IMG/VR virus record: IMGVR_UViG_3300042934_000547
Span: 167,976 to 231,975 of that record
Reading direction: 5' to 3' (one strand)
Length of the DNA: 64,000 bases
Of the stretch, positions 3,233 to 48,600 are shown piece after piece; position 1 is the stretch's first letter, and every line of letters starts with the position of its first letter. Both the position numbers and the translations under genes were made by a program. The notes below the pieces were generated by a model that saw nothing but the letters and a program-made list of their open reading frames with translations, did not search any database and was not told the DNA's origin.

Positions 3233-3365
3233 TTTATTACCCTTTCTTTGCCTCATTTTAGGATAAGATATGAGGTCTTACACATTATTTTCTTATCCAT
3301 ATCTATAATATACATTTGAAATAAGTTATATTTACATGGGGAGTGAATATTCACTCCCATTATTT

Positions 3366-17898: not shown

Positions 17899-17901
17899 TA
17901 A

Positions 17902-18933: not shown

Positions 18934-19007
18934 AACAATTCTCCTTTCAAAAATTTAAAATTTAGAAGCTACCCTTCAATGGGTAGCTTCATAAATATCT
19001 TTTATGA

Positions 19008-20150
19008 TTATATTAATTTAGGCATTGATAAAGTAGCCGTTACCTGAGGTTCAGCTTCTTCTTTGAATGCTTCTTTACCCTGAGTTAATACTTTAACACA
19101 GATTGCTTTTGCTTGTCTGTTTTCTGCTTTAAGAGCTGATAACATAGTAGCGTTAGCTGTTTGAGAAAGAGTTAACAGTTTCTTACCATAAGAGCAAGCT
19201 ATATGAGCAACTTTAACTTTTAATTGGTAAGTTTGACCGAAACGTTCTTCAGAACCAGCAGCAGAAGTATTTCTGTCTTTTTCAGCTGAAGCCAATGATG
19301 TTTGAAGTTTATCACACATTTTAGTGAATTCATCGCACATTTTCTTAATTGCCTTCATGTTGTTTTCAGCAGTTTTCTTCTGATCTTTGTAATTTGATAT
19401 GATAGATAATTGAGCTGCAACAGAAATATCGGAATCTTCAAGAGTCACTTTATTCTTTTCGCCGTCTCTTAATACTTCATACAAATTGTCTCTGAATTCT
19501 TTAGTAGTCATAGATGCTTCTGCTGAACCAGCAACGACTGTTTTGTATATTTTAGCTGTGAATTTCTCCATAGCTCCTTCACTGTCGTCACTATAACCAG
19601 CAACTGATTTCTTAGCTTTTTCAAGGTTAGCAGCGTCAACCTGAACTCCACTATCTGATAATGTAACACCAAGATCTGTTGATATTCCATCTTTAATAGC
19701 TGTCATAGCACTCAAATTCAAGTCAGCTTTGCTGATTGTGTATTTGAATCCTTTAAATTTAAAGCTGTCTTTAATAGTAGTCTTAGCTAATTCACCTGAA
19801 TACTTCTTAACAAATTCTTTGTCAGAAAGCATGAATGAATCCATCATAGAGATGAATTTCTTGAATAAAGCTACAGCCTTTCTATAAAGAGCAACTATCC
19901 AGTCTTTTACCTGATTGAAGAAATCACCAACGAATCCTTCAGTAAGTAAGTAATCCTGTCCATTAGCAGCTTCTTGGAGCTGTCTTTGTTCTATATATGT
20001 TTCAATAGCATTCCAATTAGCTTCATTTTCATAAAGAGCCTGCTCATTTATTTCCATGACACTCTCGCCAATTGCCGCTTCTATTGTATCGAATTCCGGT
20101 AAGATGCTCGCATCTTCTGATAGTACTTTTTTGCTATCTAAATTTATCAT
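19008..20150 (-). CDS. Abundant internal head protein family member
   Basis: Acidic propeptide, LTEGFVGDFFNQVKDWIVALYRK..FKKF..DKEFVKKY. Confidence 0.6.
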   Translation of the reverse strand: MINLDSKKVLSEDASILPEFDTIEAAIGESVMEINEQALYENEANWNAIETYIEQRQLQEAANGQDYLLTEGFVGDFFNQVKDWIVALYRKAVALFKKFISMMDSFMLSDKEFVKKYSGELAKTTIKDSFKFKGFKYTISKADLNLSAMTAIKDGISTDLGVTLSDSGVQVDAANLEKAKKSVAGYSDDSEGAMEKFTAKIYKTVVAGSAEASMTTKEFRDNLYEVLRDGEKNKVTLEDSDISVAAQLSIISNYKDQKKTAENNMKAIKKMCDEFTKMCDKLQTSLASAEKDRNTSAAGSEERFGQTYQLKVKVAHIACSYGKKLLTLSQTANATMLSALKAENRQAKAICVKVLTQGKEAFKEEAEPQVTATLSMPKLI

Positions 20151-20180
20151 AACGATCCTCCTAATATCATTTTGTGATTA

Positions 20181-21257
20181 TTAATATGCATATTCTTCGC
20201 TTAATTCTTCAGCAGCTTCACTGAATGCAACATCTTCCATAGCGTCAAGCAATGTTTCTTCATTTTTCTTACTGAAGTTAACACCTTTAACGAATATTGA
20301 ATATGATTGCTGAACTAGGAACTTATTAGCTGCAATAGCTGTTCCTGCTGCTAATGAGTAAAGATTACCGCAAATGTGAGCATGTTTAGATGCATTGCTT
20401 AAGCCTTTTGCATTTCTCATTCCATTTTCATCTTTTGCAGCTTTTAATGCTTCATCTCTTGCATCATCGATAACTTTAATGATATCTTTGATTATTTTTT
20501 CATTGTTCTTTTTATCTTTTTCCATGTTAGACACAAGTTTGTCATTCAATAATACTGACATGATTTGAGTCTTTTCAGTGCCGGAAATAACATCTGTTTC
20601 TTTTGATTTAGAATCGAAAAGGATATCAAATGCTTCTTTCTTAAAGTTGTCTTCTGGAGTGATTTTCTTGAATTCGCCAACTAAGCATAATTTGTATACG
20701 CCGTCTTTAGCTTTTTCATCATCAAATTCCTTGTCAGCCTGATAAGCATGAACATTCTCTTTGTCTCTCATTGCTCCACCAGCATTTTTTGCAAAGTGTT
20801 TGTCAATGTTTTTAACAACCTCAGCCTTGCTAACGATTGTTTCAATTTCGATACTCCAGTTAGATGGTTTTCTCCAATTAACTTTCATCTCAGCAAGATC
20901 ATTAGTGATGAATTTGTCTTTGTATTTCTTAACAAATTCTTTCTTAGATGTGAAGAATGATTGAACCTTCGCAATTACTTTTTCAAACATACCTTTGATT
21001 TTCTGTCCAAGTTTTACAAAAAACTCTTTCAATCCATCAAAGAATCCACCAACTCCAGCTTCTTGTATAGCCTGAATTTCAGCTTCTTCTGAAACAGCCA
21101 ATTCCCTTACATCGTTTTCGATTGATGCTCTAACTATAGCTGCATAATTGTAGCTATTTTCAGCTAATATTTGCATCACGTTGTTATCTGAATATCCTTC
21201 AGCCGCTTCCAATATAGCATTATTCATATCTCCCAGTAAATGAGTATTTATTGCCAT
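20181..21257 (-). CDS. Abundant internal head protein family member
   Basis: IQEAGVGGFFDGLKEFFVKLGQK..FEK..KKEFVKKY, paralogous to 19008..20150. Confidence 0.6.
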   Translation of the reverse strand: MAINTHLLGDMNNAILEAAEGYSDNNVMQILAENSYNYAAIVRASIENDVRELAVSEEAEIQAIQEAGVGGFFDGLKEFFVKLGQKIKGMFEKVIAKVQSFFTSKKEFVKKYKDKFITNDLAEMKVNWRKPSNWSIEIETIVSKAEVVKNIDKHFAKNAGGAMRDKENVHAYQADKEFDDEKAKDGVYKLCLVGEFKKITPEDNFKKEAFDILFDSKSKETDVISGTEKTQIMSVLLNDKLVSNMEKDKKNNEKIIKDIIKVIDDARDEALKAAKDENGMRNAKGLSNASKHAHICGNLYSLAAGTAIAANKFLVQQSYSIFVKGVNFSKKNEETLLDAMEDVAFSEAAEELSEEYAY

Positions 21258-29894: not shown

Positions 29895-30599
29895 TTATTT
29901 CCAGTAATCTACATTTCCATTTGATTCTATAAATTCTTTTCTACGAATGACCTGATTATACTGATATCTATTATAGAGCATATTCAGATAATAAATATCA
30001 ATTTCTATTCGTGGTAATATAGAACAATATTTATCAACTATGCCCCTAATAACAAATGCATCGTCTAACCATATATTCGCATTAGTCATATCGGAATATT
30101 TCTTCCCTATGTTATCCCAGTCTGGAGCTGTAATAGGTCGGTCTAATCCGATTTCAGATAAAAAGGTAGTTTCAGTGTTCCAAGAGGATGGAGTCTTCAA
30201 AAACGTATTATAGTGAACCATTATTGGAGTATTTATAAGTTGATTAAGTTGAATTATTTCGTCATCCATTAATCTTCTCATATAAAGATTATCTTCCTTA
30301 GCATTTGGGGAATATATATGTATCATACTGGGATTGGCTATAGCCATACTAGGAAAATTTGTTCTAGTAACTCTAGCTCTAGGACGTTTAGCCCCTTCAG
30401 GAACTTCATATAATACTAATTTGATATGATGAAATATAAGGTCATTTAACTTACGATTTCTAGCCTCAATAATAGCCTGAGCCTTCTTCTCGTTTAGTTT
30501 ATATTCATCATACATATATGATAACCTTTCATCAAAATCTTTTGGTATGTGACCAAACTGTTGTTCATATAGGTCCATTTTTTGTTTTCTTGTCGCCAT
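29895..30599 (-). CDS. RusA-family Holliday junction resolvase
   Basis: PDWDNIGKKYSD..IWLDDAFV matches the RusA PD.DN..K...D....DD signature. Confidence 0.8.
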   Translation of the reverse strand: MATRKQKMDLYEQQFGHIPKDFDERLSYMYDEYKLNEKKAQAIIEARNRKLNDLIFHHIKLVLYEVPEGAKRPRARVTRTNFPSMAIANPSMIHIYSPNAKEDNLYMRRLMDDEIIQLNQLINTPIMVHYNTFLKTPSSWNTETTFLSEIGLDRPITAPDWDNIGKKYSDMTNANIWLDDAFVIRGIVDKYCSILPRIEIDIYYLNMLYNRYQYNQVIRRKEFIESNGNVDYWK

Positions 30600-30614: not shown

Positions 30615-32258
30615 TTATCTACCTAAGTATTGTCTCATTAAGTTTGAAACTTTCTCCTCAAATAATCTACCAGTATTTCTCCATATATCTTGTGATACTA
30701 AATTATATTTATCGTCAAGCCATAATTTAAGTTTACGGTCGAGTTCTATTTTAGCAATATCTATTCCACATAAATTGGCTATGAAATCCATCATCAAAGT
30801 ATTATTCAAAAATTGAGTCATGGTGTTTGGTAAATATAATCCAGAATATAAATCTTTGATACTCAAATCCACATCAATCTGAGTAGGTAAGTGATCTATA
30901 TTCCAACTACCTTCTTGACCTTTATTAAATGATAATCCAGTGATTAATCCGACGTCTACGCTAAATACACTTCGTAAAAATCCCCTCACCAAGAAAGGTT
31001 TTCCATATGAATTAGGAGAAATTTGTTTAGGTATAGTCATCGCTAATAATTTTATTAATGGTATTAAGCAATATAAATATATTGCTAATGTGTTTCCATA
31101 TGGAGATGTAAATTTCATTTTAACAGAATAATCTTTAGAGAAAGATGAATCACCAAATATTTCTGGATAATCTAATTTTCCTCCAGAAACTATTGTTGTT
31201 GAGGCATCGCTAATTCTATCTATAAATCCTTGCGGCATGAATCCAAATGCAGCACTAGCAGCTTTTTCAATAACTTCTCTGTCACGCATAATATCAGTTT
31301 CGGGTCTGTTAGCCACATTAAGTCCGGCATTACCGAGAAAAAATTCCATTTCTTTAACTGTCTCTGACATTTGATTGATTTGACTACCGAGTGACGATTC
31401 CCTAGATTGGTTTCCTATACTATCTGAGACAGATACTTCACCTTCAACATAAAATGGTACAACTTCATTGGCTGAAAAGAATTTCTTAAATGACGTACCT
31501 TCTCCGGTATCTTTACCCCAATCATAACTTTTTAATGGAATTCCATTATATAATTTATAACCAATACCTAAGTATTCAGCTGTTGCTCTTGCCAACATAT
31601 TAACCTTCTCATAATATTGTTGGTATTGAAATTCAAAAGTATATAACCTACCTTCAACTCCATCTAGTAAATCAGTTAGTTGAGTTTTAGTTAGGCTTCC
31701 TTGATTAACCATACCCATTAAAACGTCTGTTCTATCTTTCTTTGTTTTACCTTCAAGAAACTTTGGACCACCCGGGGACAACATTAGAAGAGGCATTCTT
31801 TCCAATATACGTTTATGATACATTTTACCATATGGAGATTGTGTTGATGAACTGATTTCAGATAATCTTATATCAGCAGTATCAAGAAACTGGAATGGTA
31901 ATCCGTTTATTCCTCTCAATGGTTCTTTTATCTCCAACCACGGTGAGTTACCAGTACCTATAGTTGGTACGTTTCCGAATCCCCCACTTGGTGGTGGAGG
32001 TGCTTGTGGTGTTGGGGCTGGTGTTGGTTGTTGTTCATCTGATTTAACTGTCATATATGCATAACCAGTACCACTACTAGTCCATCCAGTAGAATCATGA
32101 TACCAGTGACGTGGACCTTCTATTACTCTTTCAGTCGATGTCCATACAGTACCTTTCTTACGAACTTTACCTGTAGCACTAGATGATAAACTGGGACCAG
32201 TTCTTATATGACAATCTCCAGTTTGTGTTATTGTATAAGTAGTTGCCATGTTATACAA
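30615..32258 (-). CDS. Tail/baseplate protein with N-terminal SH3b-like domain and Pro-rich linker
   Basis: HIRTGPSLSS...WYH..GWTS SH3b-like pattern, PTPAPTPQAPPPP linker, tube-initiator-like C-terminus. Confidence 0.55.
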   Translation of the reverse strand: MYNMATTYTITQTGDCHIRTGPSLSSSATGKVRKKGTVWTSTERVIEGPRHWYHDSTGWTSSGTGYAYMTVKSDEQQPTPAPTPQAPPPPSGGFGNVPTIGTGNSPWLEIKEPLRGINGLPFQFLDTADIRLSEISSSTQSPYGKMYHKRILERMPLLMLSPGGPKFLEGKTKKDRTDVLMGMVNQGSLTKTQLTDLLDGVEGRLYTFEFQYQQYYEKVNMLARATAEYLGIGYKLYNGIPLKSYDWGKDTGEGTSFKKFFSANEVVPFYVEGEVSVSDSIGNQSRESSLGSQINQMSETVKEMEFFLGNAGLNVANRPETDIMRDREVIEKAASAAFGFMPQGFIDRISDASTTIVSGGKLDYPEIFGDSSFSKDYSVKMKFTSPYGNTLAIYLYCLIPLIKLLAMTIPKQISPNSYGKPFLVRGFLRSVFSVDVGLITGLSFNKGQEGSWNIDHLPTQIDVDLSIKDLYSGLYLPNTMTQFLNNTLMMDFIANLCGIDIAKIELDRKLKLWLDDKYNLVSQDIWRNTGRLFEEKVSNLMRQYLGR

Positions 32259-32281
32259 CCTCCCTGTATTATTAAAAATAA

Positions 32282-32307
32282 AGGTGCTAGGTTAAATCCT
32301 AGCACCT
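32282..32307 (-). terminator. Terminator after the tape measure gene
   Basis: aggtgctagg-ttaaat-cctagcacct with T-tract on the minus strand. Confidence 0.75.
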
Positions 32308-32313
32308 AATTTG

Positions 32314-35300
32314 TTATTGTGTTAGTGGTAACATTGCAGCGATTAATGCCGTTAAACTATTGTCTCCTGTTCCACCCTTACCACCCTTTTCATTGATGAT
32401 ATTGAGTAATGCATTTGGGTTTATAGAGTTTCCAGAAGAAGACTTCTTAGTAAGTTCTTTAATATCGTTCTCAGTGATATTTATATTTAATTTTTTGGTA
32501 ATTAAATTCAATATGTCTTGGAGAAGCTCATTCGTTCTACCAATATTAGATACTGACATTACAATCCTTGTAAGAAGTTCAATTAAGTTGGCATCAATTG
32601 TACCAGCGTTGATTGTTGTGTTAATATTTTGACCACCGAAATTACTTTTCATTATATTCTCACGGTCACGCATTGACAATTCGGCAACTGATGACATATC
32701 AGCATCCATAAACTCAAAACTATTAGGATTATCCATAGCATCTAATTTACGGCTCTCATCAGCAAGTTCAAATGCACTCTTAATAACAGGAGATGTTTTA
32801 CCGAACCCACCAAATCTACCAGATTTCTTAGCGTTACCAAATCCACCTATCTGAGCGTTAGGATCAAAGTTCTTAACCCTAGATGCCATTATATCCGATA
32901 TAGTACCAGACCATTTTGGATCAGATGCGTAGTATTTATTCACACCACCCAAACTTCCATCGATATAATATTTTCCACCCGGTGTTAAATAGTTATTCTT
33001 TAACAATCTTGCTGTCTCATCGAAATTTTGAGCCGGGCTATCGAATGTTCTGGCTGATTTATATGGACTGCTATCATAAGCTGCATAACCAGAGAAATTA
33101 TTTTTATTTTTGGCTAAGGCACTTGTACCCCATCCACTTTCAAGAGCGACTAATGAAGATAAGAATAATGGATTTACACCAAATTTATTGGCTGCATTAG
33201 CTAAATCATTGGCATGTTTCTTCAATGGTTTATTTGCATAGGCACCAGTAAAGAATTTGTTTTGTAAATCTGCCCCACTTAATGAACCAAATCCACCACC
33301 ACGTCTTCTAACAAATCCCATACCAGCAGGCATTTGAGCTAGATTAGATGTATTGACAGCAGTTGAATTGATATTAGTGTAACCACCTATAGCATTAGCG
33401 AATGAAGCTGCTAAACCAGTAGGCATTTGAGTTCCACCATTCTCACGTGTCCAGTTAGCGATTTTTGATAAGATATTCTCATGGGTTTCGAATCCGTATT
33501 TAGTTCCAACAACTCCCATAATAGCATCACCGAATAAACCAATACCAGACGCCATTTTACCCATCCAATCAAATAATCCACTTTCTTTATTACCACCTTC
33601 AGCAATAGTTGGAACATTTGCGAACCCTGCACGATCGGTTAAACGTAAGTTCTTACCATTAATGTCAGTATAAGCCCACATGCTCTTAGTTGTTCCATTT
33701 TTGAATAATGCATCCTTTGAAAACTCTGTACTTTCTCCTTCACCCATAGGGTCATTTACCCATACACTATTATCACTAGCCATACCAGTTACAACTGAAT
33801 AATGACCACCCGGAGTATATGGAGTAGTACTAATATTTCCTTGACCATTTATAACAACTGGTCTACCCGCTTCAATATTTGCTTTTAATGAATCCCAAGT
33901 ATTACTAATATTCTGTCCCTTTACGTTGTAATCACTTAATTGTGGATTACTACTGCTAGAGAACATGTCATGAGCAGTTCCTGCATTATCAATCCAATAA
34001 CGTAATCCCATATCTGTTAAATCTAGCGGTGATATAGGTTTATTGTTAAATGCAGATGTAATCATTGACATTGCTGTTGGTCCACATGCAGCATCACCAT
34101 ATGTGTAATTTTGAGCATAATACAAATCTTTCCATTGAGGATCATTTTGGGACCAATATGGGAAACCATTAAGCAATCTTAATTGGTTATTAAATGATAC
34201 GTTTTCACCAACCGTAGTTGCTTTTCCATCTAGGTATTCTTCATAACCTCTCCACCTGTTGTATATTGCATCTACTCCCGTTTGTTGTTCTAATGCCTTC
34301 CTTAATTCTTCATTATGAGCATTAGTTTTTTGATAATAATCTGGTGCTAAAGATTGTTGATATTCAGTATATTTCTTCCAATAATCAGTATTCTGAGATA
34401 TTGGAGTACCCTTTGGCGTCGTTGATATCCGTCTAGAATTTGATGTCCTATTCGCTGGTTTACCTTTATTATTACCGAATCCTCCACCAGTTAAATATTG
34501 TTTCGAATTTGATGAAGTTCTCGGATTTATGAATTTAAACTTACTATTACCGAATCCTCCACCAGTTAAATATTGTTTCGATGAATTTGATTTACCACCC
34601 ATCCCAACTACTGTTGAATCACCATCTTCGATTATATAACTATCAGCGAGTTCTCTCTTGGTTTGAGATTTAGGCACTGATGGAACTTTATCTAGATACT
34701 TATTCTGTAATTGAGCCATTGTTCTGCTATCTTCAGTTATATCTAATTCGCCATTCCATGCATCATATAACCATACCGCAAGTTTTTGAAGGAAGTTATA
34801 TCCTAAGAATGATGTTGTTACTAAGTTGACAATTTCGAGAATCCATACAGCAGGAGCTTGTAATAAAAATTGCATCACTCCTGATATTGCTTGCATTTTT
34901 GCATCAACATCTTCTTTTGGTACTCCAAACCATTTAGCTGCACCTGTCTTTGATGCACCCCATGCTCCAAATCCAACCATGAATACTAGATTCACAATTC
35001 CACCGGTAGCAATACCAGCAACATCTCTACCAGATTTCTCAGCTATTTTAGCTGCAATTTTGGTATTACTGAAGTATTTATGACAGCTAGAAAATGTATT
35101 TTTGATAAATGCACTAAGTCCTTTTTGACCAAAGTTAGGCATGAATTTTTTAACCACTTTGAGGATACTTTCGATAACTGGATCTAATAATCCAACAAAC
35201 CAAGTAACTAGTTTACCTCTAGAACCTTCAACAGCAGTTCTTATACCTTTCTTGCTTATATTTTTAGCTGTGACTTCTGCACCCTCTTCTAATACTTCTT

Positions 35301-38300
35301 TAGCACCAACTTTAGCAGCACCTTTTGTTGCTTCTTGCATACTTTCATTTAAGACCTTATCTGCTGCTTTTTTGGTAACTTGTTCAGCACCTTTACCAGT
35401 TGCTTCTTCAACGCCTTCGATTATTATTTTTTCGCCGGTCTTCTTCAATGCACCCTCTGCGACTGTTTCAGTGGCTTCTTCGGCAACTTTCTTACCAAAT
35501 AATCCTTTGATGCCCTTCCATGCACCTTTGACACCGTCTTTAGCTTTTCCTACTAAAAATCCACCAGCAGCACCTGCTCCAGTTGAAATCAGACTAGTAC
35601 CATAACCAGTAGCTGCTCCGACTCCCCATTTAGCTACTTTCCAACCAGTGTATATTTTTAGGAAATCTAACAAATGTTCTTTATTTGCCACCATAATATC
35701 CCACATGTTCTGTAGTATGATAGGCATATTTTCTATTATCTTTTGACCTATTCCTAGAATACCTTCTTTAATCTTATCTAAGAATGTAGGTAATTTTTCA
35801 GTTAGAAATGGTTTAATATGACTAGTCCAGATTTCTCCGAATTTATCTCCAGCTTTACCAGCAGCTTCAGCTGGATTATTCCATATCCATTCCATATTTT
35901 TACCAAATCCAGTATTACCCAACCATTTTGACCAGATAGTTTTAGCAGCCTTCACACCTAAGGTACCGAGTAGCATTTTACCCAAGAATGGACCAACGCC
36001 TTTTAATAAATTTCCAACAAATCCTAGACCATGAGTAACCTTGTCTTTTATATTTGTTGTAGCTTTACCAAAAGCACTTTCACTAATACCAGTTATCATG
36101 GATTTTAATTTACCCCATTGCTTGAAGTTCTTATCCTGAATTGGTCTCCATTCACCACTTGAATCCTTATCGTATTTAATAGGAATTCCTTCATCTGTGA
36201 ATATTGTTATAGTTTTACTTTCAGCATCATAAGAACCCTTAGAGTATTTTGTTAATTCCTCTTCAGTCATCTTATTAGGGTCATAGTAACTACCACCATT
36301 TAATATTTCTTGATGGCGTTTAGTCTGTAAGTCTAAAGTTTCTTGACCTATTGTTGTTCCAGTATCAGGTACACCATTTTTGGATTGAAGATTAACAACA
36401 TTTGATTTAGCTGTCTTCTCCTCTAATGCCTTAAATTTAGCTCCATCTTTTCCATGTACCATGAAATCACGTTGAGCTTCGAGTGACTCTAATATCTGGT
36501 TTTGAATGCTAGTTTGTTCTTTAGCTATCTCATTACCTTCTTCAGCAACAAGTGTAGCTCCATCCTTCGGTAATTTCTTTGCATCCATTTCTTTTTTATA
36601 CTCAGCATAAGTCTTAAATCCTCTTTGTTTAGCAAAGGTATTACTTTCGGATAATAGATACTCCATACCTTTTAAAGCCTGAGAATTACCGAATGAATTT
36701 TTAATACCCTTTGTGTATCTTAATTCAGATTCACGGAACTTTTCTTCTTCTGTGTCGAGTACGTTAAATTGTTTTCTATATCTCTTAATAAAATTAGCTT
36801 CGCCTTTTTCAATGGCTTTATCCATCTTATTTTTAGTCTTTAGATATAATTTTTCAACTTGGTCAAACGTGTTAAACCATTCAGCTCTGTCCATAGGACT
36901 CTTTAAATCAACTAAACCACGTTCATACTCGTTTTTCATTGCGTGATAACGTGCTTCGATTTCATCAAATCCACGTTTATCTCTATTTTGCCAGAACTTA
37001 GTCAGAGAGTTTTGTTTCAGTTTTTCTCTTTCTGTTTCCATCTCTTTAGTTATTCTAGTTCGTTTATCTTCTACATTAACTTTGAATTGGTCTCGTATTC
37101 CTTGTCTGGTTCTCTGAGCTTTACCCGCAATACTACGTTGAGCATCAGATTGCATAAAGTTTGGACCTAAAAGTTTACGTAGCCATGGGTATTTATTAGC
37201 AGAGTATCTTGGGTCAATACCTTGAGCAGCTTCAGCCTTAGCTTGTTCTATCTCACTTTGTAATTCATAGTATTCATCCTCAGACATCTTCTCAGTAAAC
37301 TCCATCATGTTTTTATCATAACGATGGAATTTATCTCTACCATGTAATACACCTTGGGTACTACCCATCACACCTAATCCTAGTCCTAAAGCTGGATTTA
37401 TAGCTCCACCGCCAATAACCCCAAATAGAGTTTTTAATATTCCACCCTTAGAAGTTAATCCCGGTCTGAAATATTTATTATTTCGTACTCTAAATGTCTC
37501 ACGTTCTTCTGCTGTCATGTAATCAGCATCACCTTGACGTATATGCTTAGCCCTAAGTGATTTGCTACTTAATCCTAATGCACCTAAAACTCCATTTGTA
37601 ACAGCACCGAATAGATTAATTGGAGTACTCACAACACCCTTAATTAAAGCTCCAAGTGGTTTGAATAGGAATTTAGTCATAAATCTTTTAATTGGTCCAC
37701 CAATGGTTTCATCAAATAAACCTTTGACATAATTACCTAATTTCTTTCCAACTAATTTCAGTTCTTTTCCAAATGGCTGTAAAGCATACAAGAATGGATT
37801 CTTTATTTTCTTATCGAAGAATTCTTTAAATCCATCTTTCATACCAGATATCATTTTCTTAAATGGACTAGTTATAGCTTCTCCGACAATAGGTATTAAA
37901 CCATTTTCACGTTTCTTAGTAACTGGGTCCCATTTACCAAATATCATTTCTCGTACTGTATCATTTGTTGAGAGTGCTCCAAGAGTTCCTCCGAGTAAAG
38001 TACCACCAACTAAACCAAATGGTCCAATAAAGCTTCCGATAGCTCCTATAGCCGCACCACCCAATGTCTTTGGTAATGCCTTTTTAAAGGTTTCCTGACT
38101 TTTCTTACTAAATAAACCGTTATCATCAATACCATCACCGAATAAGAACTTTTGAGCTCCTTCATTATTCTTGGCAAATGCAATAGCAGAACCAGCTAAT
38201 AAACCAGTGATAGGTCCACCCGGTACAAATGGTAATATGGACATTAAAGCTCCACCAACACCAAGTTTGAGTGTATCTGGTGCATATTTGTTAAAGGTTC

Positions 38301-41300
38301 TAACAAGTTCAGCCGGAATCATACCATCATCAGCTCTATTACCCTTAGCATCTTTAGTACCGAATAATTTATTTTGTAAAGTTTCACTATTTTTAATGAT
38401 ATTAACACTAGCACCCACAGCAGCACCAAGTAACGGTCCACCAATGACACCCGGAATCAATCCAATAGCTCCACCGATTAAAGCTCCTGAAACTCCTTCA
38501 GGTAAATGATCTAAAACTTCATCATAAACCTTTCTAGAATTAAGCTTAAGGTTTTTCTTAAACTCTTCTTCCTTACCTTGTTCAATACCAGTAAAAGCTG
38601 ATACAGCTGTAGATATTTCATCAGCCATTTCTCTTTTTATAGCTCCGAATAAACCTCTTTCGCCATAATTTTCTTTATCCCATTCATGGGCTTTATCGAG
38701 ACCTTTACCGAATTTATTACTAGCTTTATTTTTAAGATCATCAAGGTTATCAAAATCCATAGTCTTATAAAATGCATCAAATACCTTGGTCTTGATATTA
38801 TATAAATTCTTATTATCACTTTCGTAAGCATAAGGTTCTTGAATAACACCCATTTGCTCCCTAAGTGTTTTTCTAATAATATTATTATCAAAACTAAAGT
38901 TTTTAAGATTAGGATCTTTTGCAGTAGGAATTGCCTTTTTAGCTTTTCTTCTAGCTGTATCGATATCTTTGATAGCTTTATTAAACTGCTCTCTAGTGAG
39001 TTGTCCTCGTTTATACATCTCACCAAAAGCCATAGATAGAGTATCATACATACGATTTGTGCCTTCGATGTATCTTAAACGCTTAAGTGATAGAACTACT
39101 TCCGTTCCGTCTTCACCAAGTGTTGCCACTGTTGGTTCACTAACAACGCCTTGAGCAGCAAAAGCAGGAATCTTCTCTGCACCCAATAATTGATTAGTTA
39201 TCCTGTCCTGTGCATCCTTACTATGATTATTGATGTACGGTACATTTTTTGTAATCCTCTTAGCTTGTTCTTTATCAAGCAGATTCATTGGTAAAAAGTC
39301 ATAATCATCATCTGTTAACTTACCAAAAACTCCACCACTAAAAGCATTTGCTTGTATAGGACCCTGTTTATTCTTAATTTTACCATCATGAATTAATTTT
39401 CTGATAGCTGGAATATTACGAGGATCTTGATAATTATCTTGTGTTATTATACTATCAAGGTTTGGAGCTGATATACCTCGTTTTTGTAAAATTGTTCTCC
39501 ACTTATCCCTAGTGTATTGAAGTGGATTAATTGAACCTAAATTGCTTTTAGCAATTCCAAGGGCATTTAACTTTTCAGCTTCTCTATCATCTGCATCATC
39601 GAATAACTTCATTAATGACTGATAATCGCCATAATTTGTTCTTTCCCTTAGATTACCACTTCTATCCTTAGCCCAAGTATTAAAGTTTGTTGCATTAGAT
39701 AGAACTTTTTGTGTATTTAAACCACCCTCTGATGATAAATCTAATCTATCAGGAGATGTTGGTGTAAACTTAGATACGAATTTTGCCATAGCTGGGTGAT
39801 GAGATAATCTCGTATCAATTATCTGTAATAAATTCACCATATCGGATACTTTAGCCATCATGCCTTTCATGAATATAGCTGGATTAGCCTGCATATTTCC
39901 GAATACAGATTGGTTATTTTCATTATCTTTAAACTTAGAACGAATATCGTTTTGTTCTTGTACGTAGTGAAGTTGTTGTAATAACGCCGAGCTGGATTGT
40001 TTATCAAGTTCATCGAACGAGGTCATAGCACCAGATGTACCAAACAGATCATTGTACATTTTTTCTTTTTCTTTTCTTATACTAAATGTACCACTTGTAC
40101 GTCTATATGAACCTATTTGTTTACGACGTTGCTCTATAGCTAATAATCTATCTTTAAGTCTAGTAATTTCTATGTCGATAGCTTTATTACGGTTCTTATA
40201 ATAATCAACTCGTTTCTTATATCCAGATGATGCTTGAGCAGTTTTTCTTTTATCACCTGATTGTTTAGATTTATTAACTTCACTTAACCAAGCACTTAGT
40301 GATTTATTATTGGACTCTTTTTCAGACTCCAACTTTTTAATCCTTTGGGAGATTTCTCTTGATTCCTTAGTCAATGTATCAAGTTCTTTGAGATAATCAT
40401 CATAATTCTGGCTATTATCAACAAATTTACTCTTTAATTCTTGAGTTCTACTAGGAGTTAATCCAAATCCAGCTGTTTCTAATCCCTGATTTACAATATC
40501 AGAATAATCAATTTCTTTCTCTTTCTTATCTCCAACGAACCAGCTAAACATTCCTCGTGTATCTTCACCGATTTGTTTAGTAAAGTCACCCATAACCCCG
40601 CCGTGTCTCCATCCTTTAGCATCTTTCTCGCCAAATAGATGTGTCATAAACTCGTCGGCTTTATCTTTAGCTTTACCTTTCCATTCGTCAACCTTTTCAA
40701 AAACACCCCAATCTTCTAATCTTTCACGGAGAGGAGTTAGAAAATAATCATTAATTTTATCATTAAGTTTTTCGAATGTGTTACGAATACTAACAACCAT
40801 CATATCCATATATCCACGGACTTTTTCGCCTTGATAGTTAACTTCTTCACCACCATAGAAGAATTCATAAATTCTTTTATCAACCTTACTAAGCATTTTA
40901 GTGATGGTTTCGGTAGGTTTACTAAGAACTTCGGACATTTTATCTGATGTGTATGTAAATTTATCAACAATGCCATCGGCAGCAATAAGACCATCTAAGA
41001 AACCAATCTTTTTACCAGCTTCATCATTAGATAAATCATATTGACCATCTTCTTTTTTCTTCATCCATGGATAAATTTTTCGGTCTTTCTCCCTAGCATT
41101 TTCTAGAGCTTTTTGTTCGATTTCAGCAACCTTTCTTTTACGTTCTAATTTACTTTCTGTATTATCACTAAAGGTTCCATCTTCATTTTCATCATCAAGT
41201 AAGCCAGAAAATAATGGTCTACCGTGTTCATCGTCCCATTCTCTATCTTCTTGAAGTTTTCGTTTAGCATTGATATTTAGATTTTGATAATAAGTAGCTT

Positions 41301-43509
41301 TATAGAAGTTCTCTGAATTATCAGATACAACTCCACCATAATCAACTAAATCCATATCTTGCCAATTTTTACTATTTCTTTCTTTAGCACGTTTCTTAGC
41401 TCTCTCATATTGATCAATTCTACGCTTATTTTCCTTATCAACAGAGCTACGTTGTTTACTGATATCCTTTCTACGCTGGTCGTCAAATGATAACACTTTC
41501 CTAGTTTCGGATAACATAGATCTTCTATCCAAACCACCAATGTTAAGAACTGAACCACCACCACGGATTGGAGACATTCCCATATCACCCATAGGCATAC
41601 CAAATGCTGGATAAGTAACTATACCTTCTAACATAACATTTCTTATATCTCTTAGATAATCGAAAATCGTTTTGTTATAAGCATCTTTAGTTTCACCTAA
41701 ACTCATTTTATTCATAACGCCAGTGATAACGTCATCCCCAAAGCCATCTTTTTGAATTTTTAAATGCTCATTTAATTTAGTATTATTAAGCAAAGCATCA
41801 TAGATATCTTCCTGTCTAGCTTTGTCTTTAGCGTATTGACCCTTATTACTGAACATTTCTTGATTAGCTTTCATCAATTTATGTGGATCAACATATTTAA
41901 TCATTGATGTGATAAGATCATAATTATCATCGCTTATTTCAAGATCTGGTAATCTGTTTTTCTTAAACTTTCTAGGACTGATAAGTTCACCTCTATCAAA
42001 GAAATAAGAGAAATAATTCTTCATATCTTCTCTAAATGATTGCTGTTCATCGAAATTCATAACAATCAATTGGTCAACTCTATCTTTAATTTCTGACTGT
42101 ATATCACTAAAGGTCCTATTAATAACATTTTCCTTCATACTAGATAATTCTTTGGATAAATTAACAGTGTTAATCCACTGACCTCTATCAAAATCAAATC
42201 TCATCTCAGCTGAACCAGTCATTGCTGATAACTGTTTAGCTAGTAATGTAGGTATAACTTCAGTTAATGCTTTTTGTGCTTTACCATTCCAAGCCATATC
42301 ACCTTTATGATAATCTGCAACACTCTTTTCTTTAGCTTTATTTATTCTTGGTACTAATAATCCAGCCAATGTTTTTACAAGAGGATTATTTTCCTCGTCA
42401 TTAGCAATGGAATTTAGCATAGCCATAGATGTAGCAAATGAACCACCCACTGAAGTATCAAGTTTCCCCATTGCCTTTCTTAAATCTTTCCCAATCATTT
42501 TATTAGCAACTGCCCTAGGAATAAATTTAAGCGGTGAAGAAACCATGTGTAAATATGGGTTAGCATTTGGATCATCATTATCGCTGAACATTGTAGCCAA
42601 TTGAGTAACATCTTCAAGTTTGGCATTTATGTTGTCACCAATTGATTTTACATATTTCTTTAAATCAGTAACTCCGGATGCCTGTATTACATCATCATAG
42701 TATGTTCTACGGTCTTCTTTATCTTTCTTTTGTTCAGGTTGTCTAGCTTTATACATATCACGCTGCATTTCAACAACTTCTTTCATGTAACCCAGCATAT
42801 CAGTTTGAAATGCAACGGTTTTTTCATAAAAAGATTTGCTATTCTGGGCATGAGTTTGCATTATATCAATGCTGTTTTTAGCAACGAAATCTAATTGTTT
42901 ATTTATATTTCCGAGAGCACCCTGAAGCATGAAATTGGCTTTTTGATTTCTGATTATTTGGTCTCTGTATTGAACTTTTGAATTCTCGACAGCATATTCT
43001 GATGTAGCTACTAATGTCTTAGCAATAGAATTGGCATTAGTGATACTACTATGAATAATACTATCAGATACCATATGATCACCTTGAGTCGGTCGTCTAT
43101 CTACCTTTGGTTCATCGATATCATCATCAAAATTACCATCAAGATCAAATTCTTTATCAAAATCAAAGTCATCATCACTATTATACCCTCCGTCATTTTC
43201 CATGCCGAATGATCTATTAGCGAACAATTCATCACGCTGTCTATTATAAAACTTACCAGATTTGATATCTTCAAATATAGCTTTTTTACCCTCTGCGGCA
43301 GTTTTATAAATATTATGTGATTTCATACGTTCATTAACACGATTGAATAATTGACGATGATCTTTAATATCATAAATAATATCCCTAAAAACTTCGCTAT
43401 TTTTAGCGACAGCATCGAACATCGCTGGTGCGTCATCTCTTATTATATCAGATGTCGAAAAAGCAACAGACGAAGCAATGTTTTTAGTATATTCAAGGAT
43501 TTTTTTCAT
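32314..43509 (-). CDS. Tape measure protein (~3730 aa) with C39-like peptidase and GH73 glucosaminidase domains
   Basis: Coiled-coil and Gly-zipper stretches; PAFAAQGVVSEPTVATLGEDGTEVV TMP motif; YWSQNDPQW..ACGPTAMSM..GHY..VNDP; LESGWGTS..KNNFSGY..YYASDPKW; start MKKILEY after AAGGAG. Confidence 0.85.
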   Translation of the reverse strand: MKKILEYTKNIASSVAFSTSDIIRDDAPAMFDAVAKNSEVFRDIIYDIKDHRQLFNRVNERMKSHNIYKTAAEGKKAIFEDIKSGKFYNRQRDELFANRSFGMENDGGYNSDDDFDFDKEFDLDGNFDDDIDEPKVDRRPTQGDHMVSDSIIHSSITNANSIAKTLVATSEYAVENSKVQYRDQIIRNQKANFMLQGALGNINKQLDFVAKNSIDIMQTHAQNSKSFYEKTVAFQTDMLGYMKEVVEMQRDMYKARQPEQKKDKEDRRTYYDDVIQASGVTDLKKYVKSIGDNINAKLEDVTQLATMFSDNDDPNANPYLHMVSSPLKFIPRAVANKMIGKDLRKAMGKLDTSVGGSFATSMAMLNSIANDEENNPLVKTLAGLLVPRINKAKEKSVADYHKGDMAWNGKAQKALTEVIPTLLAKQLSAMTGSAEMRFDFDRGQWINTVNLSKELSSMKENVINRTFSDIQSEIKDRVDQLIVMNFDEQQSFREDMKNYFSYFFDRGELISPRKFKKNRLPDLEISDDNYDLITSMIKYVDPHKLMKANQEMFSNKGQYAKDKARQEDIYDALLNNTKLNEHLKIQKDGFGDDVITGVMNKMSLGETKDAYNKTIFDYLRDIRNVMLEGIVTYPAFGMPMGDMGMSPIRGGGSVLNIGGLDRRSMLSETRKVLSFDDQRRKDISKQRSSVDKENKRRIDQYERAKKRAKERNSKNWQDMDLVDYGGVVSDNSENFYKATYYQNLNINAKRKLQEDREWDDEHGRPLFSGLLDDENEDGTFSDNTESKLERKRKVAEIEQKALENAREKDRKIYPWMKKKEDGQYDLSNDEAGKKIGFLDGLIAADGIVDKFTYTSDKMSEVLSKPTETITKMLSKVDKRIYEFFYGGEEVNYQGEKVRGYMDMMVVSIRNTFEKLNDKINDYFLTPLRERLEDWGVFEKVDEWKGKAKDKADEFMTHLFGEKDAKGWRHGGVMGDFTKQIGEDTRGMFSWFVGDKKEKEIDYSDIVNQGLETAGFGLTPSRTQELKSKFVDNSQNYDDYLKELDTLTKESREISQRIKKLESEKESNNKSLSAWLSEVNKSKQSGDKRKTAQASSGYKKRVDYYKNRNKAIDIEITRLKDRLLAIEQRRKQIGSYRRTSGTFSIRKEKEKMYNDLFGTSGAMTSFDELDKQSSSALLQQLHYVQEQNDIRSKFKDNENNQSVFGNMQANPAIFMKGMMAKVSDMVNLLQIIDTRLSHHPAMAKFVSKFTPTSPDRLDLSSEGGLNTQKVLSNATNFNTWAKDRSGNLRERTNYGDYQSLMKLFDDADDREAEKLNALGIAKSNLGSINPLQYTRDKWRTILQKRGISAPNLDSIITQDNYQDPRNIPAIRKLIHDGKIKNKQGPIQANAFSGGVFGKLTDDDYDFLPMNLLDKEQAKRITKNVPYINNHSKDAQDRITNQLLGAEKIPAFAAQGVVSEPTVATLGEDGTEVVLSLKRLRYIEGTNRMYDTLSMAFGEMYKRGQLTREQFNKAIKDIDTARRKAKKAIPTAKDPNLKNFSFDNNIIRKTLREQMGVIQEPYAYESDNKNLYNIKTKVFDAFYKTMDFDNLDDLKNKASNKFGKGLDKAHEWDKENYGERGLFGAIKREMADEISTAVSAFTGIEQGKEEEFKKNLKLNSRKVYDEVLDHLPEGVSGALIGGAIGLIPGVIGGPLLGAAVGASVNIIKNSETLQNKLFGTKDAKGNRADDGMIPAELVRTFNKYAPDTLKLGVGGALMSILPFVPGGPITGLLAGSAIAFAKNNEGAQKFLFGDGIDDNGLFSKKSQETFKKALPKTLGGAAIGAIGSFIGPFGLVGGTLLGGTLGALSTNDTVREMIFGKWDPVTKKRENGLIPIVGEAITSPFKKMISGMKDGFKEFFDKKIKNPFLYALQPFGKELKLVGKKLGNYVKGLFDETIGGPIKRFMTKFLFKPLGALIKGVVSTPINLFGAVTNGVLGALGLSSKSLRAKHIRQGDADYMTAEERETFRVRNNKYFRPGLTSKGGILKTLFGVIGGGAINPALGLGLGVMGSTQGVLHGRDKFHRYDKNMMEFTEKMSEDEYYELQSEIEQAKAEAAQGIDPRYSANKYPWLRKLLGPNFMQSDAQRSIAGKAQRTRQGIRDQFKVNVEDKRTRITKEMETEREKLKQNSLTKFWQNRDKRGFDEIEARYHAMKNEYERGLVDLKSPMDRAEWFNTFDQVEKLYLKTKNKMDKAIEKGEANFIKRYRKQFNVLDTEEEKFRESELRYTKGIKNSFGNSQALKGMEYLLSESNTFAKQRGFKTYAEYKKEMDAKKLPKDGATLVAEEGNEIAKEQTSIQNQILESLEAQRDFMVHGKDGAKFKALEEKTAKSNVVNLQSKNGVPDTGTTIGQETLDLQTKRHQEILNGGSYYDPNKMTEEELTKYSKGSYDAESKTITIFTDEGIPIKYDKDSSGEWRPIQDKNFKQWGKLKSMITGISESAFGKATTNIKDKVTHGLGFVGNLLKGVGPFLGKMLLGTLGVKAAKTIWSKWLGNTGFGKNMEWIWNNPAEAAGKAGDKFGEIWTSHIKPFLTEKLPTFLDKIKEGILGIGQKIIENMPIILQNMWDIMVANKEHLLDFLKIYTGWKVAKWGVGAATGYGTSLISTGAGAAGGFLVGKAKDGVKGAWKGIKGLFGKKVAEEATETVAEGALKKTGEKIIIEGVEEATGKGAEQVTKKAADKVLNESMQEATKGAAKVGAKEVLEEGAEVTAKNISKKGIRTAVEGSRGKLVTWFVGLLDPVIESILKVVKKFMPNFGQKGLSAFIKNTFSSCHKYFSNTKIAAKIAEKSGRDVAGIATGGIVNLVFMVGFGAWGASKTGAAKWFGVPKEDVDAKMQAISGVMQFLLQAPAVWILEIVNLVTTSFLGYNFLQKLAVWLYDAWNGELDITEDSRTMAQLQNKYLDKVPSVPKSQTKRELADSYIIEDGDSTVVGMGGKSNSSKQYLTGGGFGNSKFKFINPRTSSNSKQYLTGGGFGNNKGKPANRTSNSRRISTTPKGTPISQNTDYWKKYTEYQQSLAPDYYQKTNAHNEELRKALEQQTGVDAIYNRWRGYEEYLDGKATTVGENVSFNNQLRLLNGFPYWSQNDPQWKDLYYAQNYTYGDAACGPTAMSMITSAFNNKPISPLDLTDMGLRYWIDNAGTAHDMFSSSSNPQLSDYNVKGQNISNTWDSLKANIEAGRPVVINGQGNISTTPYTPGGHYSVVTGMASDNSVWVNDPMGEGESTEFSKDALFKNGTTKSMWAYTDINGKNLRLTDRAGFANVPTIAEGGNKESGLFDWMGKMASGIGLFGDAIMGVVGTKYGFETHENILSKIANWTRENGGTQMPTGLAASFANAIGGYTNINSTAVNTSNLAQMPAGMGFVRRRGGGFGSLSGADLQNKFFTGAYANKPLKKHANDLANAANKFGVNPLFLSSLVALESGWGTSALAKNKNNFSGYAAYDSSPYKSARTFDSPAQNFDETARLLKNNYLTPGGKYYIDGSLGGVNKYYASDPKWSGTISDIMASRVKNFDPNAQIGGFGNAKKSGRFGGFGKTSPVIKSAFELADESRKLDAMDNPNSFEFMDADMSSVAELSMRDRENIMKSNFGGQNINTTINAGTIDANLIELLTRIVMSVSNIGRTNELLQDILNLITKKLNINITENDIKELTKKSSSGNSINPNALLNIINEKGGKGGTGDNSLTALIAAMLPLTQ
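34470..34581. repeat. Perfect 37-bp direct repeat, 75-bp period
   Basis: tattaccgaatcctccaccagttaaatattgtttcga at 34470-34506 and 34545-34581 (encodes SKQYLTGGGFGN twice). Confidence 0.95.
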
Positions 43510-43612
43510 AACTCGATTTCTCCTTTCTATATTACTGTATTGCCTTATGAGTATGTTGAAAAGAAACAAAAAGTGGGAGTACAACTTAATGTACTCCCAA
43601 TTGATCTAATTA

Positions 43613-45570: not shown

Positions 45571-45664
45571 ATAATCATCCTCCCAAAATCATATAATACT
45601 ATGTTTGAGAACGTGTATATTTATAATAGGGAACAATATAATAATAAAAATTAGGAGGAATAAT

Positions 45665-48600
45665 ATGTATTTTACTAATGAAATGAAACCAATGGTTTTG
45701 TATAAAAATAAAGTAAGATTACCTCGTGGGGAAAAAAGACTAGATAAGGGTAGTATTGTATTCTTATTAACACCGAATCTGGATAGTGTAATAAGAACTA
45801 TAAATAATCCCTTGTTTGATACCCGTTATTATGAGCATTTATTTATAGAAAGAGATGTGAGCTATTTCATTGGTAATAGAGAAGTTGTCAATGAAGACGG
45901 TGATATAACTGAGATATCTATGAGTGATAAATTCTTGTTAGAAGATCATGCTATACTTGAAACTGATAATCAAATCTTTTTAAGTCCATTAACTGAAGTT
46001 GATGGAGAGTACATGACTGTTCTTAAGAGAATGCTTTATAACGATAGGATGAAAACCCCAAAGACAATAGTAGCTAAGTATAATGAATACAATGAAAAAG
46101 CTGAAAAGAAGTTAAAGTGGAATCTCACACTTAACTTGTATCGTAAAGCTAACCTATTTTATGATATAAGCTACTATACCGAAACATTCTTTAAGAACCT
46201 TAAATTCGAAAAGGATAAAGCACTTGGTATCTATTTAGAATTTCTACAGAATTATTTAAATAGCTTTGATATGAAAAAATATGGCTATACAAAAAAGACC
46301 CTGATAATCCCATTAGAGGATTGGTATAATGTGGATAAGACATTCAATTATATAAATGCTATCAATCCAATTACATTATTCTTTAGGTACTTTAGGAAAG
46401 ACTTGGCTCTATTACAAAAAGTATTCACCGGATTTGATATGATATTTACTATTGGGGATAAATATTCGTTTAGAATCAATATTGACGAGTTCGATTATAA
46501 TAAAAATTATCCTACATTCGTTAGATATCTAAATGTGACAGCAAAGCAGGATGAAGTGAATAATTCTGAATTTGACATCGATGAAAATAATAAAGATTCT
46601 AGGGAAATCGTTAAAACCGATGTAAAAGAAGAAATAAGTAAAAATACAAAAATTAAAATGAAATCAGTCACTGGCGATGATGCTACTCCAAGTGCAGAAG
46701 AACTTGATAATGTTATAGATATCATCGTTGACGAAAAGATGAAAGAAACAGAAGAAGAGAATAATACTGAAGAAGTCTACGAAGAAATTGATAAAAATCC
46801 TGAAATAGCAAAACTGATTGCATATTCTAAAGACGAAGAGAAATTGTCTAAGTCGACAGCTAAACGAGAAATCAGAATAAATAAACTTAGGGATAGCTAT
46901 CAAGACGTCAGTATTAATAATAAAAAGATATCCAATCTTAAACCGTCAGTAGAAGCAGCGATACTAAAACCAGCTAAAGAAGTTAAGGTTGATGCTCTTG
47001 ACGATACATGGGATAATCTTACATATATGAACTTCGAAAAGACCTATAATAAGGAATTGAAGGATTATCATTTTGGTAAAATTTTGGAACATTTTGGAAC
47101 CAATGTAAAATATCCTATAATGGTAACTGATATTAAGGTAGAAAATAAGTCTACAACTGAGGATAAATATGATGAATATTCGATTGAAACAGAAGATAGT
47201 TTTGGTAAACGTGCTACATTAAAGATACACTTACCTAGATTTATTAATGATAGATCAATATTCATAAAAGGTAATGAAAAGAAATTACAAAAACAATTAG
47301 TATTATTCCCAGTAGCTAAAACAGAGACTAACTGTGTACAGATAGTATCTAACTACAACAAATTATTTATCGAGTTATTTGGAAGTACATCGAATGTAAT
47401 TGAAGATAGAATATTAAAGACTTTAACTAAACTTCAGGAAAAAGGCTCAAAAACTGTCAAAATTACAACTGGTAATGCTACAGAACTCAATAAATATTAT
47501 GTACTACCAAATGATTACGTAGAAATGAGTGGTAAGATATATCGTATAGAAGCAGATGACGTTACTTACTATTTTGACCAGTCTGAAATACGTGATATCA
47601 TTCTAAAGAAAAAACCTAATGAGAAGTTTGATACAGGAATACCTTTTGCTATCAATAATAAGACTAATATGGTATATGTATATGATGGAAATATTCCAGA
47701 TATTACATTTTCATATATGCTTAATGAGCACTTAAAACAAAATAAGGAATATAGTGAGGCATACGATGGTACTTCTATAGCTAAACGTTATTCATATAGT
47801 AGGGTTAGAATACTTAGTGCCAGAATTCCACTAATTGTCTTTTTAGCATTTAATGAGGGATTATTAACAGTATTGGATAAATCAAATGTCCAATATGAAA
47901 TACTCGACAAAAATGATAGAGATGACAGGGATTTATTTGACTACATTAAATTTAGCGATCGAGTTATAAAGTATAAAATAACTAATAACTCTAGCATTTT
48001 GATGAATGGATTAAAAGTTTGTAATACTCAAGAATATACATTAGCTGAAATGAATCAGAGCCAAAGTTATATAGATATCATTGGACAGTTTGGTTCTAAG
48101 ACATTAGCTGACCCTATTGAATCATTCCATGAGTTAGAGTTAGACCCAATGACTCTCGATGTTATTCATGATCTCAAACTACCTGATAAATTTACTGAGT
48201 TATTATTATATGCTAATGATATGCTATCAGATAATAGCTATGAAGATCATAATATCATATATAATAACAGATTAAGAAGCAATGAGATTATCAACGGTTT
48301 ACTATATAAATCTCTGTGTGAATCATACCAAGAATACAAGATGGGCATAAGAAATGGAAGAAGGGATAATAAAATATCCATAAAACCAACATGTGTTATT
48401 GATAAATTACTAACTCAAAATACTATGCTTGATGCATCAAAATCTACGGCATTATTGGAGATGGAAGAATCTGAAACTGCTAGTAAAAAGGGTTTTGGCG
48501 GAATGAACTTAGAAAAAGGATATAAGCTTAACAAAAGACAATATGATGAATCAATGTTAAACGTTCTATCTATATCATCCGTAGCAGGACCTACTATCGG

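Follow-up and report, generated by a model that had tools for sequence, protein, structure and literature searches.

A giant tail protein with a C-terminal array of wall enzymes

We analysed a window of 64,000 nucleotides (positions 167,976 to 231,975 of virus record IMGVR_UViG_3300042934_000547 from IMG/VR). It encodes a giant tape-measure-like virion protein in which copies of the tetrapeptide GGFG, putative sites of maturation cleavage, stand at the borders of cell-wall enzyme modules. The gene and all of its features described below lie on the minus strand. The open reading frame (ORF), read together with its translation, spans 32314-43584 (3,756 codons), and with the ATG at 43509 as its probable start it encodes a protein of 3,731 residues (32314-43509) that is identical to P0003; residue numbers below are those of the ORF. 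No tape-measure profile in Pfam or PHROG matched the protein, and its length, its hydrophobic segments and its synteny with gp183/ORF182 of phage EL favour a giant protein of the tail lumen or tail tip. Such giant virion proteins with a C-terminal wall hydrolase are known from jumbo myophages as phiKZ gp181 and EL gp183 (PMC5380687). From sequence comparison, we take the window protein to be their positional counterpart, a carrier of wall enzymes in the tail lumen or tip, because the gene order is the same, because the main domain of the next gene product, P0002, is homologous to EL ORF182 (encoded directly after ORF183, a giant structural peptidoglycan hydrolase), and because a weak N-terminal motif is common to the window protein and ORF183, their pairwise similarity being marginal (E 0.014). 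The phiKZ and EL proteins differ in that they carry a lysozyme/transglycosylase domain, lack a C39-like one and are not known to contain a GGFG code.

In chain order, the C-terminal part of the window protein consists of a hydrophobic core stretch, a GGFG pair, a peptidase module, a single GGFG, a glucosaminidase, a second GGFG pair and a C-terminal region with a helix. The hydrophobic stretch, read from the translation as the last and glycine-zipper-like stretch of the core (residues ~2850-2945; 34750-35037), ends just upstream of the first GGFG pair, which is carried by two tandem 25-residue repeats containing LTGGGFGN at the start of the enzyme array (34438-34587). The peptidase is a C39-like papain-fold cysteine peptidase domain (residues 3135-3318; 33631-34182), matched by Pfam Peptidase_C39_2 (PF13529) over residues 3141-3280 (E 8e-16; 59.4 bits against a cut-off of 24, and 62.4 bits in the genome search). 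Its Gln/Cys/His/Asp set is complete, with Gln3146 at 34147-34149, the catalytic Cys3167 of the sequence AACGPT at 34084-34086, His3261 at 33802-33804 and Asp3278 at 33751-33753. The GGFG of RRRGGGFGS (33286-33297) separates the peptidase module from a GH73-type N-acetylglucosaminidase (residues 3460-3567; 32884-33207) and lies ~27 residues upstream of the Pfam start of that domain (Glucosaminidase, PF01832; E 9e-14; 52.7 bits against a cut-off of 30.2). The glucosaminidase also matches PHROG endolysin families and, by tblastn, the lysins of PBS1, AR9 and phage G; the Glu of its ALESGWG (residues 3480-3486), in an E-S-G-W-G context, is presumably the GH73 catalytic residue. The array is closed by a pair of motifs 12 residues apart, QIGGFGN and RFGGFGK (32800-32847), and is followed by the C-terminal region of ~160 residues (32317-32787), whose family-conserved terminal helix, we infer, anchors the protein to the tail tip or baseplate hub.

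An AlphaFold2 model was computed for residues 2995-3460 on the basis of 125 family sequences and covers three of the GGFG sites. The predicted local distance difference test score (pLDDT) exceeds 90 in the papain-like domain (3135-3318) and is below 50 at all three sites, in the two LTGGGFGN repeats as in RRRGGGFGS, with helical segments of middling confidence at 3065-3112 and 3333-3398. The peptidase fold is ~100 residues from the nearest upstream motif and ~110 residues from the nearest downstream motif; since the helical segments lie in between, the motifs delimit modules and not bare folds. An earlier reading of this stretch, made without database searches (hereafter the original prediction), had recognised both enzyme domains, which the Pfam matches bear out. 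It also had the motifs bracket each catalytic domain, which holds for modules but fails for the bare peptidase fold at the distances just given.

Number and placement of the GGFG motifs

The five GGFG motifs of the giant protein begin at residues 3009, 3034, 3430, 3580 and 3592 and therefore all fall within its last 750 residues. In the two LTGGGFGN copies the tetrapeptide occupies 34549-34560 and 34474-34485, in IGGFGN 32836-32847 and in FGGFGK 32800-32811. A sixth copy is found in P0002, where the GGFG of PSGGFGN (residue 92; 31974-31985, minus strand) directly follows a Pro-rich linker. All six were located where the original prediction had put them, and four of the six read GGFG-Asn. Across the six-frame ORFs of the whole 231,975-bp genome, seven GGFG were counted against ~0.54 expected by composition, and the only further copy lies in a folded-looking part of a 740-residue ORF outside the window. 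The last 800 residues of the giant protein were shuffled 20,000 times, which gave a mean GGFG count of 0.04 and a maximum of 2, compared with the observed 5.

Because the two LTGGGFGN copies share an identical 33-nucleotide core, they were treated as a single event, one recent duplication of 75 nucleotides that was missed by Tandem Repeats Finder and found by eye and by codon comparison. The other four GGFG sites differ in codons and flanks. A functionless cluster that arose by chance, by low complexity or by recent duplication would be in keeping with this duplicated pair and with the general abundance of Gly-rich linkers, but it is highly improbable in view of the shuffles and the homologues: with the duplicate counted once, there are still four independent sites within 600 residues of the giant protein and one more in the neighbour gene, against the ~0.04 expected, and the same tetrapeptide stands at equivalent borders in distant relatives. 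The motif is a real, selected border mark.

Conservation of border motifs across the protein family

The protein family was collected by exhaustive search with the N-terminal 675 residues (a word search gave five relatives) and comprises 1,035 representatives at 50% identity, mostly 3,000-6,000 residues long, 426 of them with E <= 1e-30. A scan of viral contigs with the C-terminal 807 residues gave no relatives, and megablast of the region against cultured phages gave no match; the glucosaminidase domain alone does find cultured phages. Family members (including P0010-P0157) have a conserved N-terminal domain of ~620 residues and a C-terminal helix, with alike C-terminal helices in P0004, P0006-P0009 and P0052, and the wall-enzyme domains between the two are freely swapped. 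A C39-like domain occurs in 123 of the 135 full-length members and came first in the enzyme array in the seven members inspected. Its Cys and His are kept in all 141 domain copies of the family and its Asp in 129 of the 141, with Asn in a further 11. The other enzymes vary among members and include glucosaminidase, SLT, phage tail lysozyme, T4-type lysozyme, M23, NlpC/P60 and CHAP domains.

In the lineage of the window phage, the short Gly-x-Gly motif that borders the lytic cassette takes the form GGFG. Across the family, x-G-x-G tetrapeptides ([FY]G[RK]G, SGRG, YGMG, GGFG and others) peak at three places over a background of ~3-10 per bin: 80 instances in the 25 residues before C39, 58 instances at +25 to +50 after C39, and 46 instances (in 34 proteins) at 100-150 residues from the C-terminus. 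The closing GGFG pair of the window protein, 165-177 residues from its C-terminus, stands at the family-wide peak preceding the C-terminal region. Tetrapeptides are reused within proteins, with 226 identical pairs compared with 113.6 +/- 10.4 when shuffled among proteins; P0007, for example, has three copies of SRSGRG, and P0113 has five of SGRG. The types of motif follow phylogeny in a tree of the N-terminal domain built using FastTree. On the same tree, repeated GG[FYW]G is scattered and forms no single clade (5 changes for 5 proteins), which points to a constrained solution and not to simple inheritance.

GGFG proper is rare in the family, but two distant members show it at matching borders. 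In P0004 the first C39 domain is preceded by GGFA and the second by GGYGGFGEE, and GYGGFGEG comes right after the glucosaminidase. In P0052 one GGFG lies two residues ahead of the first ordered strand of C39, and another three stand between the lysozyme and the C-terminal helix. Conservation of the motif at domain borders in homologues had been set in advance as a test, and in both proteins GGFG indeed stands before C39 and after the last enzyme.

Several further features of the family were observed. The motif [KN]-G-[IVM]-G-G-[ED] occurs at the array end in P0016, P0028, P0036, P0051, P0061 and others, ~100-150 residues from the C-terminus, and in several of the proteins closest to the window protein, acidic residues come after Gly-x-Gly (GNGPED, GGSGDD, GFGEG); these acidic-flanked array-end motifs may be a related or a different class of site. 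P0004 (L001 741-12875) contains two internal repeat arrays at residues ~2700-3350, one of about ten short W-containing repeats (KQWGSDTWNDA type) and one of five ~75-residue repeats with GLLDENGDPLPFGEGMAELK, and it has a second C39-like domain far upstream (~1054-1191), before the glycine-zipper region. An M23 domain lies inside the giant protein in many relatives. The linker sequence GGFGN of the window (32836-32850, 34474-34488 and 31974-31988) recurs letter for letter as a conserved motif within the M23 domains of P0016, P0043 and P0061; the M23 in-domain sequences of relatives with GGFGN are SGGFGNMITMKD and SESGGFGNAVYVKD, and the common form is GYGN. This likeness may be coincidence, mimicry or a relic.

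The family pattern would also suit motifs that are never cut, a reading that we regard as possible while leaning slightly away from it. The motifs would then be flexible Gly hinges with one sticky aromatic or basic residue. As hinges, they would let the three enzyme-array copies stagger in the narrow tail lumen; as docking sites, they would bind the interior of the tube or hub, wall polyanions or DNA, much as FG or RGG motifs do; and the C39-like domain would be one more wall endopeptidase. Consistent with this, the motifs are disordered, Gly-rich and in tandem at the array ends (two in the window protein, three in P0052), which fits avidity, the variable residue is aromatic or basic across the family ([FY]G[RK]G, SGRG, GGFG), members lacking C39 have the motif, and both fold and literature favour a wall-peptidase role for C39_2. 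Generic hinges, however, need no exact tetrapeptide that is reused per protein and swapped as a set between lineages, no binding partner emerged, and cleavage at such borders is common in known tape-measure and tail-lysin proteins that contain enzyme domains.

Fold and relatives of the C39-like domain

A Foldseek search with the AlphaFold2 model of the domain matched the pseudomurein endoisopeptidase PeiR, 3erv, the PEP domain of ComA, PCAT1 and staphopain; searching the sequences of solved structures with the peptidase region gave no significant hit. The match to ComA PEP had a target-normalised TM-score of 0.75 (root-mean-square deviation 2.9), with ComA and PCAT1 close behind PeiR. Since PeiR and the double-glycine peptidases match about equally, the fold fits a wall role and a processing role alike. 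PeiR is the closest in fold; it and the C39-like domains of lysins act on the cell wall and are unlinked to flanking site motifs, and the likeness to PeiR leaves the reuse of GGFG unexplained. ComA, PCAT1 and LahT share with the window domain the fold and the Gln/Cys/His/Asp active site and cut next to Gly-Gly; the window domain differs from them in having neither a fusion to an ATP-binding cassette (ABC) transporter nor a leader, and in matching C39_2 and not C39 proper. Pfam found no ABC domain in the giant protein. The residues upstream of the six sites (LTG, RRRG, QI, RF, PS) are patternless and disordered and lack an amphipathic leader with hydrophobics at -4, -7 and -12; the GGFG sites are therefore not canonical C39 substrates.

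The window domain also matches family C70 (PF12385) at E 0.0018, with 18.7 bits falling just short of the Pfam cut-off of 19. AvrRpt2, a C70 peptidase, recognises PxFGxW, autoprocesses and cuts after Phe-Gly, with Asn or Asp as the new N-terminus. C70 is papain-like and close to C39, and its Phe-Gly cut before Asn or Asp resembles the GGFG-Asn of the window, whereas the Pro and Trp of its site are missing there and AvrRpt2 is an effector of a plant pathogen and not a phage protein. Complex prediction between the C39-like domain (3130-3320, with alignment) and a 47-residue peptide containing the last two GGFG gave a score of 0.01, which speaks neither for nor against binding.

The motifs could instead act as a pseudo-substrate, Gly-rich peptides filling the active site of the C39-like domain (or of the phage's M23 peptidases) and keeping it silent in the virion until ejection, with no productive cut. 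They do lie near the peptidase module, Gly-rich peptides resemble interpeptide bridges, and GGFGN is identical to the in-domain M23 motif of P0016 and P0043. We nonetheless consider this improbable, because AlphaFold2 placed no motif on the domain and left them at pLDDT <50, and because most copies are >100 residues from the peptidase fold.

Putative maturation cleavage of the enzyme array

Two tail proteins with embedded enzymes provide the closest precedents. Tal of TP901-1/Tuc2009 has the Gly-rich sequence NGGGNSGGGD just before its first catalytic domain and is proteolytically processed there, giving virions with or without wall-degrading domains (PMC11409707). Tal is a tail fibre or hub protein with one site of another motif sequence, whereas the window protein is a tape-measure-like giant with five sites. 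The enzyme array of Tal includes an M23 domain; the window protein lacks M23 and has a C39-like domain instead. As the T5 tail is assembled, pb2 is cleaved between a hydrophobic stretch and the muralytic domain, and the enzymatic fragment remains in the tail tip (bioRxiv 10.1101/2022.09.20.507954). Hydrophobic stretch, GGFG pair and enzymes follow one another in the same order in the window protein; T5 differs in having a single metallopeptidase motif and no reported repeated site motif, and cleavage is experimental in T5 and predicted here. Lambda gpH and T4 gp5 were grouped with pb2 as cleaved tail proteins of a like kind. A defined site of the Tal and pb2 type, the GGFG pair between the hydrophobic stretch and the enzyme array, is thus present in the window protein, with equivalents in P0004 and P0052.

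Because T5 pb2 and TP901-1 Tal are cut at like junctions, we rank maturation cleavage first and propose the GGFG motifs tentatively as its sites, uncleaved hinges or docking sites being almost equal; in this proposal we infer the cleavage, the protease and the timing alike. Enrichment of the motif, its position in disordered linkers, its positional conservation, its reuse within proteins and the intact catalytic triad speak for cleavage. Cuts at the two sites at the array start, the one between the enzymes and the two at the array end would separate the wall hydrolases from the hydrophobic, helical core on one side and the conserved C-terminal helix on the other. The freed enzymes would travel as separate pieces in the tail lumen or tip and attack the wall at infection, a model that we liken to T5 pb2, T4 gp5 and TP901-1 Tal. 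The first candidate protease would be the protein's own C39-like domain, with a cut either after Gly-Gly or after Phe-Gly, Phe then occupying the S2 pocket as it does in AvrRpt2; alternative cutters would be a host protease or either of the two stand-alone M23 peptidases of the phage.

We give the C39-like domain acting in cis about half of the weight that cleavage as a whole receives, and its part in the cutting is a guess. In its full form, with the domain as a cis-acting polyprotein protease and not a wall hydrolase, its Gly-x-Gly sites co-evolving by lineage, and an interchangeable wall-enzyme cassette freed from the tape measure at tail maturation or ejection, the proposal is rather unlikely to be right. 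It would make the protein a phage-tail counterpart of the self-processing of MARTX and AvrRpt2. The recognition sites would then be GGFG in the window phage and [FY]G[RK]G or SGRG in others.

True cleavage sites whose cutter is never the C39-like domain, but a host protease, a stand-alone M23 or the head-maturation protease, are an alternative to which we also attach a low probability. The phage encodes two separate M23 peptidases, M23 enzymes cut Gly-Gly, the Gly-rich Tal site of TP901-1 is processed, and relatives that lack C39 and end their array with an M23 domain still have the motif. The host takes part in the cleavage of T5 tail protein, according to a reference cited in bioRxiv 10.1101/2022.09.20.507954, which would fit a host protease here. 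On the other side, nothing puts the small M23 proteins in the virion, and tail proteins never meet the prohead protease. Sites of the phiKZ-type head protease have the form S/A/G-x-Glu, with the cut behind the Glu; such sites were rejected here, there being no Glu in, or in register beside, any of the six GGFG motifs.

A number of observations weigh against cleavage by the C39-like domain, or against cleavage altogether. The best of the structural matches, PeiR (8z4h, E 1e-4), is a cell-wall isopeptidase, and PF13529/C39-like domains have been catalogued as wall endopeptidases in phage lytic proteins (mycobacteriophage LysA; 260 phage lytic proteins), so the domain may have no part in processing. 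The proximal Gly-x-Gly on its N-side is the turn of the first beta-hairpin of the C39 domain, structural and not a free site, and the tandem copies at the array ends fit a binding motif equally well. No repeated motif of the typed classes was found in 62 of 135 members, and tblastn with the N-terminal domain found no relative among the cultured phages of INPHARED. Seven of the 12 C39-less members retain a G-hydrophobic-G-G motif at the array end. The ratio of observed to expected motifs is 2.35-2.48 in C39-bearing and 1.36-1.54 in C39-less proteins, and masking of the C39 flanks lowers the former to 1.8, against 1.4-1.5 in those lacking C39. A dependence of the motif on C39 is hence unsupported, the gap being mostly due to the domain's own flanks and the array-end motif being kept in those seven members.

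Two claims of the original prediction narrowed for similar reasons. Its border code stands in so far as the motifs are non-random, lie at disordered module borders and accompany an intact triad, but relatives conserve only the outer borders of the enzyme array and not every domain border. Its motif in the adjacent tail protein is present in the window phage, but the GGFG of P0002 is missing from the homologues in five of five relatives; because none of the five shows it, a general rule by which the neighbour protein carries the lineage motif was rejected.

Neighbouring genes and source genome

The gene after that of the giant protein encodes the adjacent virion protein P0002 (30615-32258, minus strand, as are its parts). 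From its N-terminus, P0002 has an SH3-like domain (32034-32258; SH3_3, E 0.048), the Pro-rich linker (31986-32033), the GGFG given above and a conserved virion domain of phiKZ, AR9 and Staphylococcus jumbo phages (30618-31910). Of the SH3b domain and Pro linker originally predicted for this gene, the linker is clear; the SH3 call is weak in P0002 itself, and the homologue P0005 exceeds the Pfam threshold. Directly after the two tail genes lies a RusA-like Holliday-junction resolvase (29895-30599, minus strand), an odd yet stable neighbour of structural genes. The order of giant protein, P0002 homologue and RusA is kept in five metagenomic relatives; it is intact in L003 and L005, and one small ORF is interposed in L006 and L007. 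The giant proteins of Staphylococcus jumbo phage UFV_DC4 show the same synteny, have no C39 domain and contain only poly-Gly/Ser linkers, and are uninformative on the motif.

The virus record is complete at 231,975 bp, has direct terminal repeats and a G+C content of 30.8%, and ends with the window. Because the window codes for a split multisubunit RNA polymerase beta subunit, GroEL, a major head protein and several phiKZ-type virion proteins, the source virus is, by gene content, a jumbo myophage of the phiKZ/AR9 super-group. The beta-type RNA polymerase subunit (1,448 residues; 45605-49951, plus strand) has ~30% identity to its counterparts in Listeria LPJP1, Yersinia phiR1-37 and Staphylococcus jumbo phages. 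A GroEL-like chaperonin is encoded at 60857-62818 (plus strand) and a DHH phosphoesterase at 52136-53221 (minus strand). Four consecutive genes of 343-741 codons (15673-21257, minus strand) had no PHROG match and adjoin genes matching virion structural families. The two stand-alone M23 peptidases are encoded outside the window, at genome positions 154225-154791 (189 codons, plus strand) and 46990-47679 (230 codons, minus strand); they may represent a domain that moved out of the giant protein, or a candidate trans-acting Gly-Gly peptidase. The region was complete in one soil metagenome run, with small shares in wastewater and manure runs.

Significance of the border motifs

We rate the family-wide pattern as adding more than a motif in a single phage would, and as kin to the known processing of tail lysins and tape-measure proteins. 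A large family (>1,000 clusters at 50% identity) swaps enzyme domains between fixed border marks. If these marks are cut sites, they would show how jumbo phages pack several wall enzymes into one tail protein and then release them, and would provide a rule for the limits of natural lysin modules that would be useful in metagenome enzyme mining. If they are uncut, they would still be a conserved short linear motif in tail assembly.

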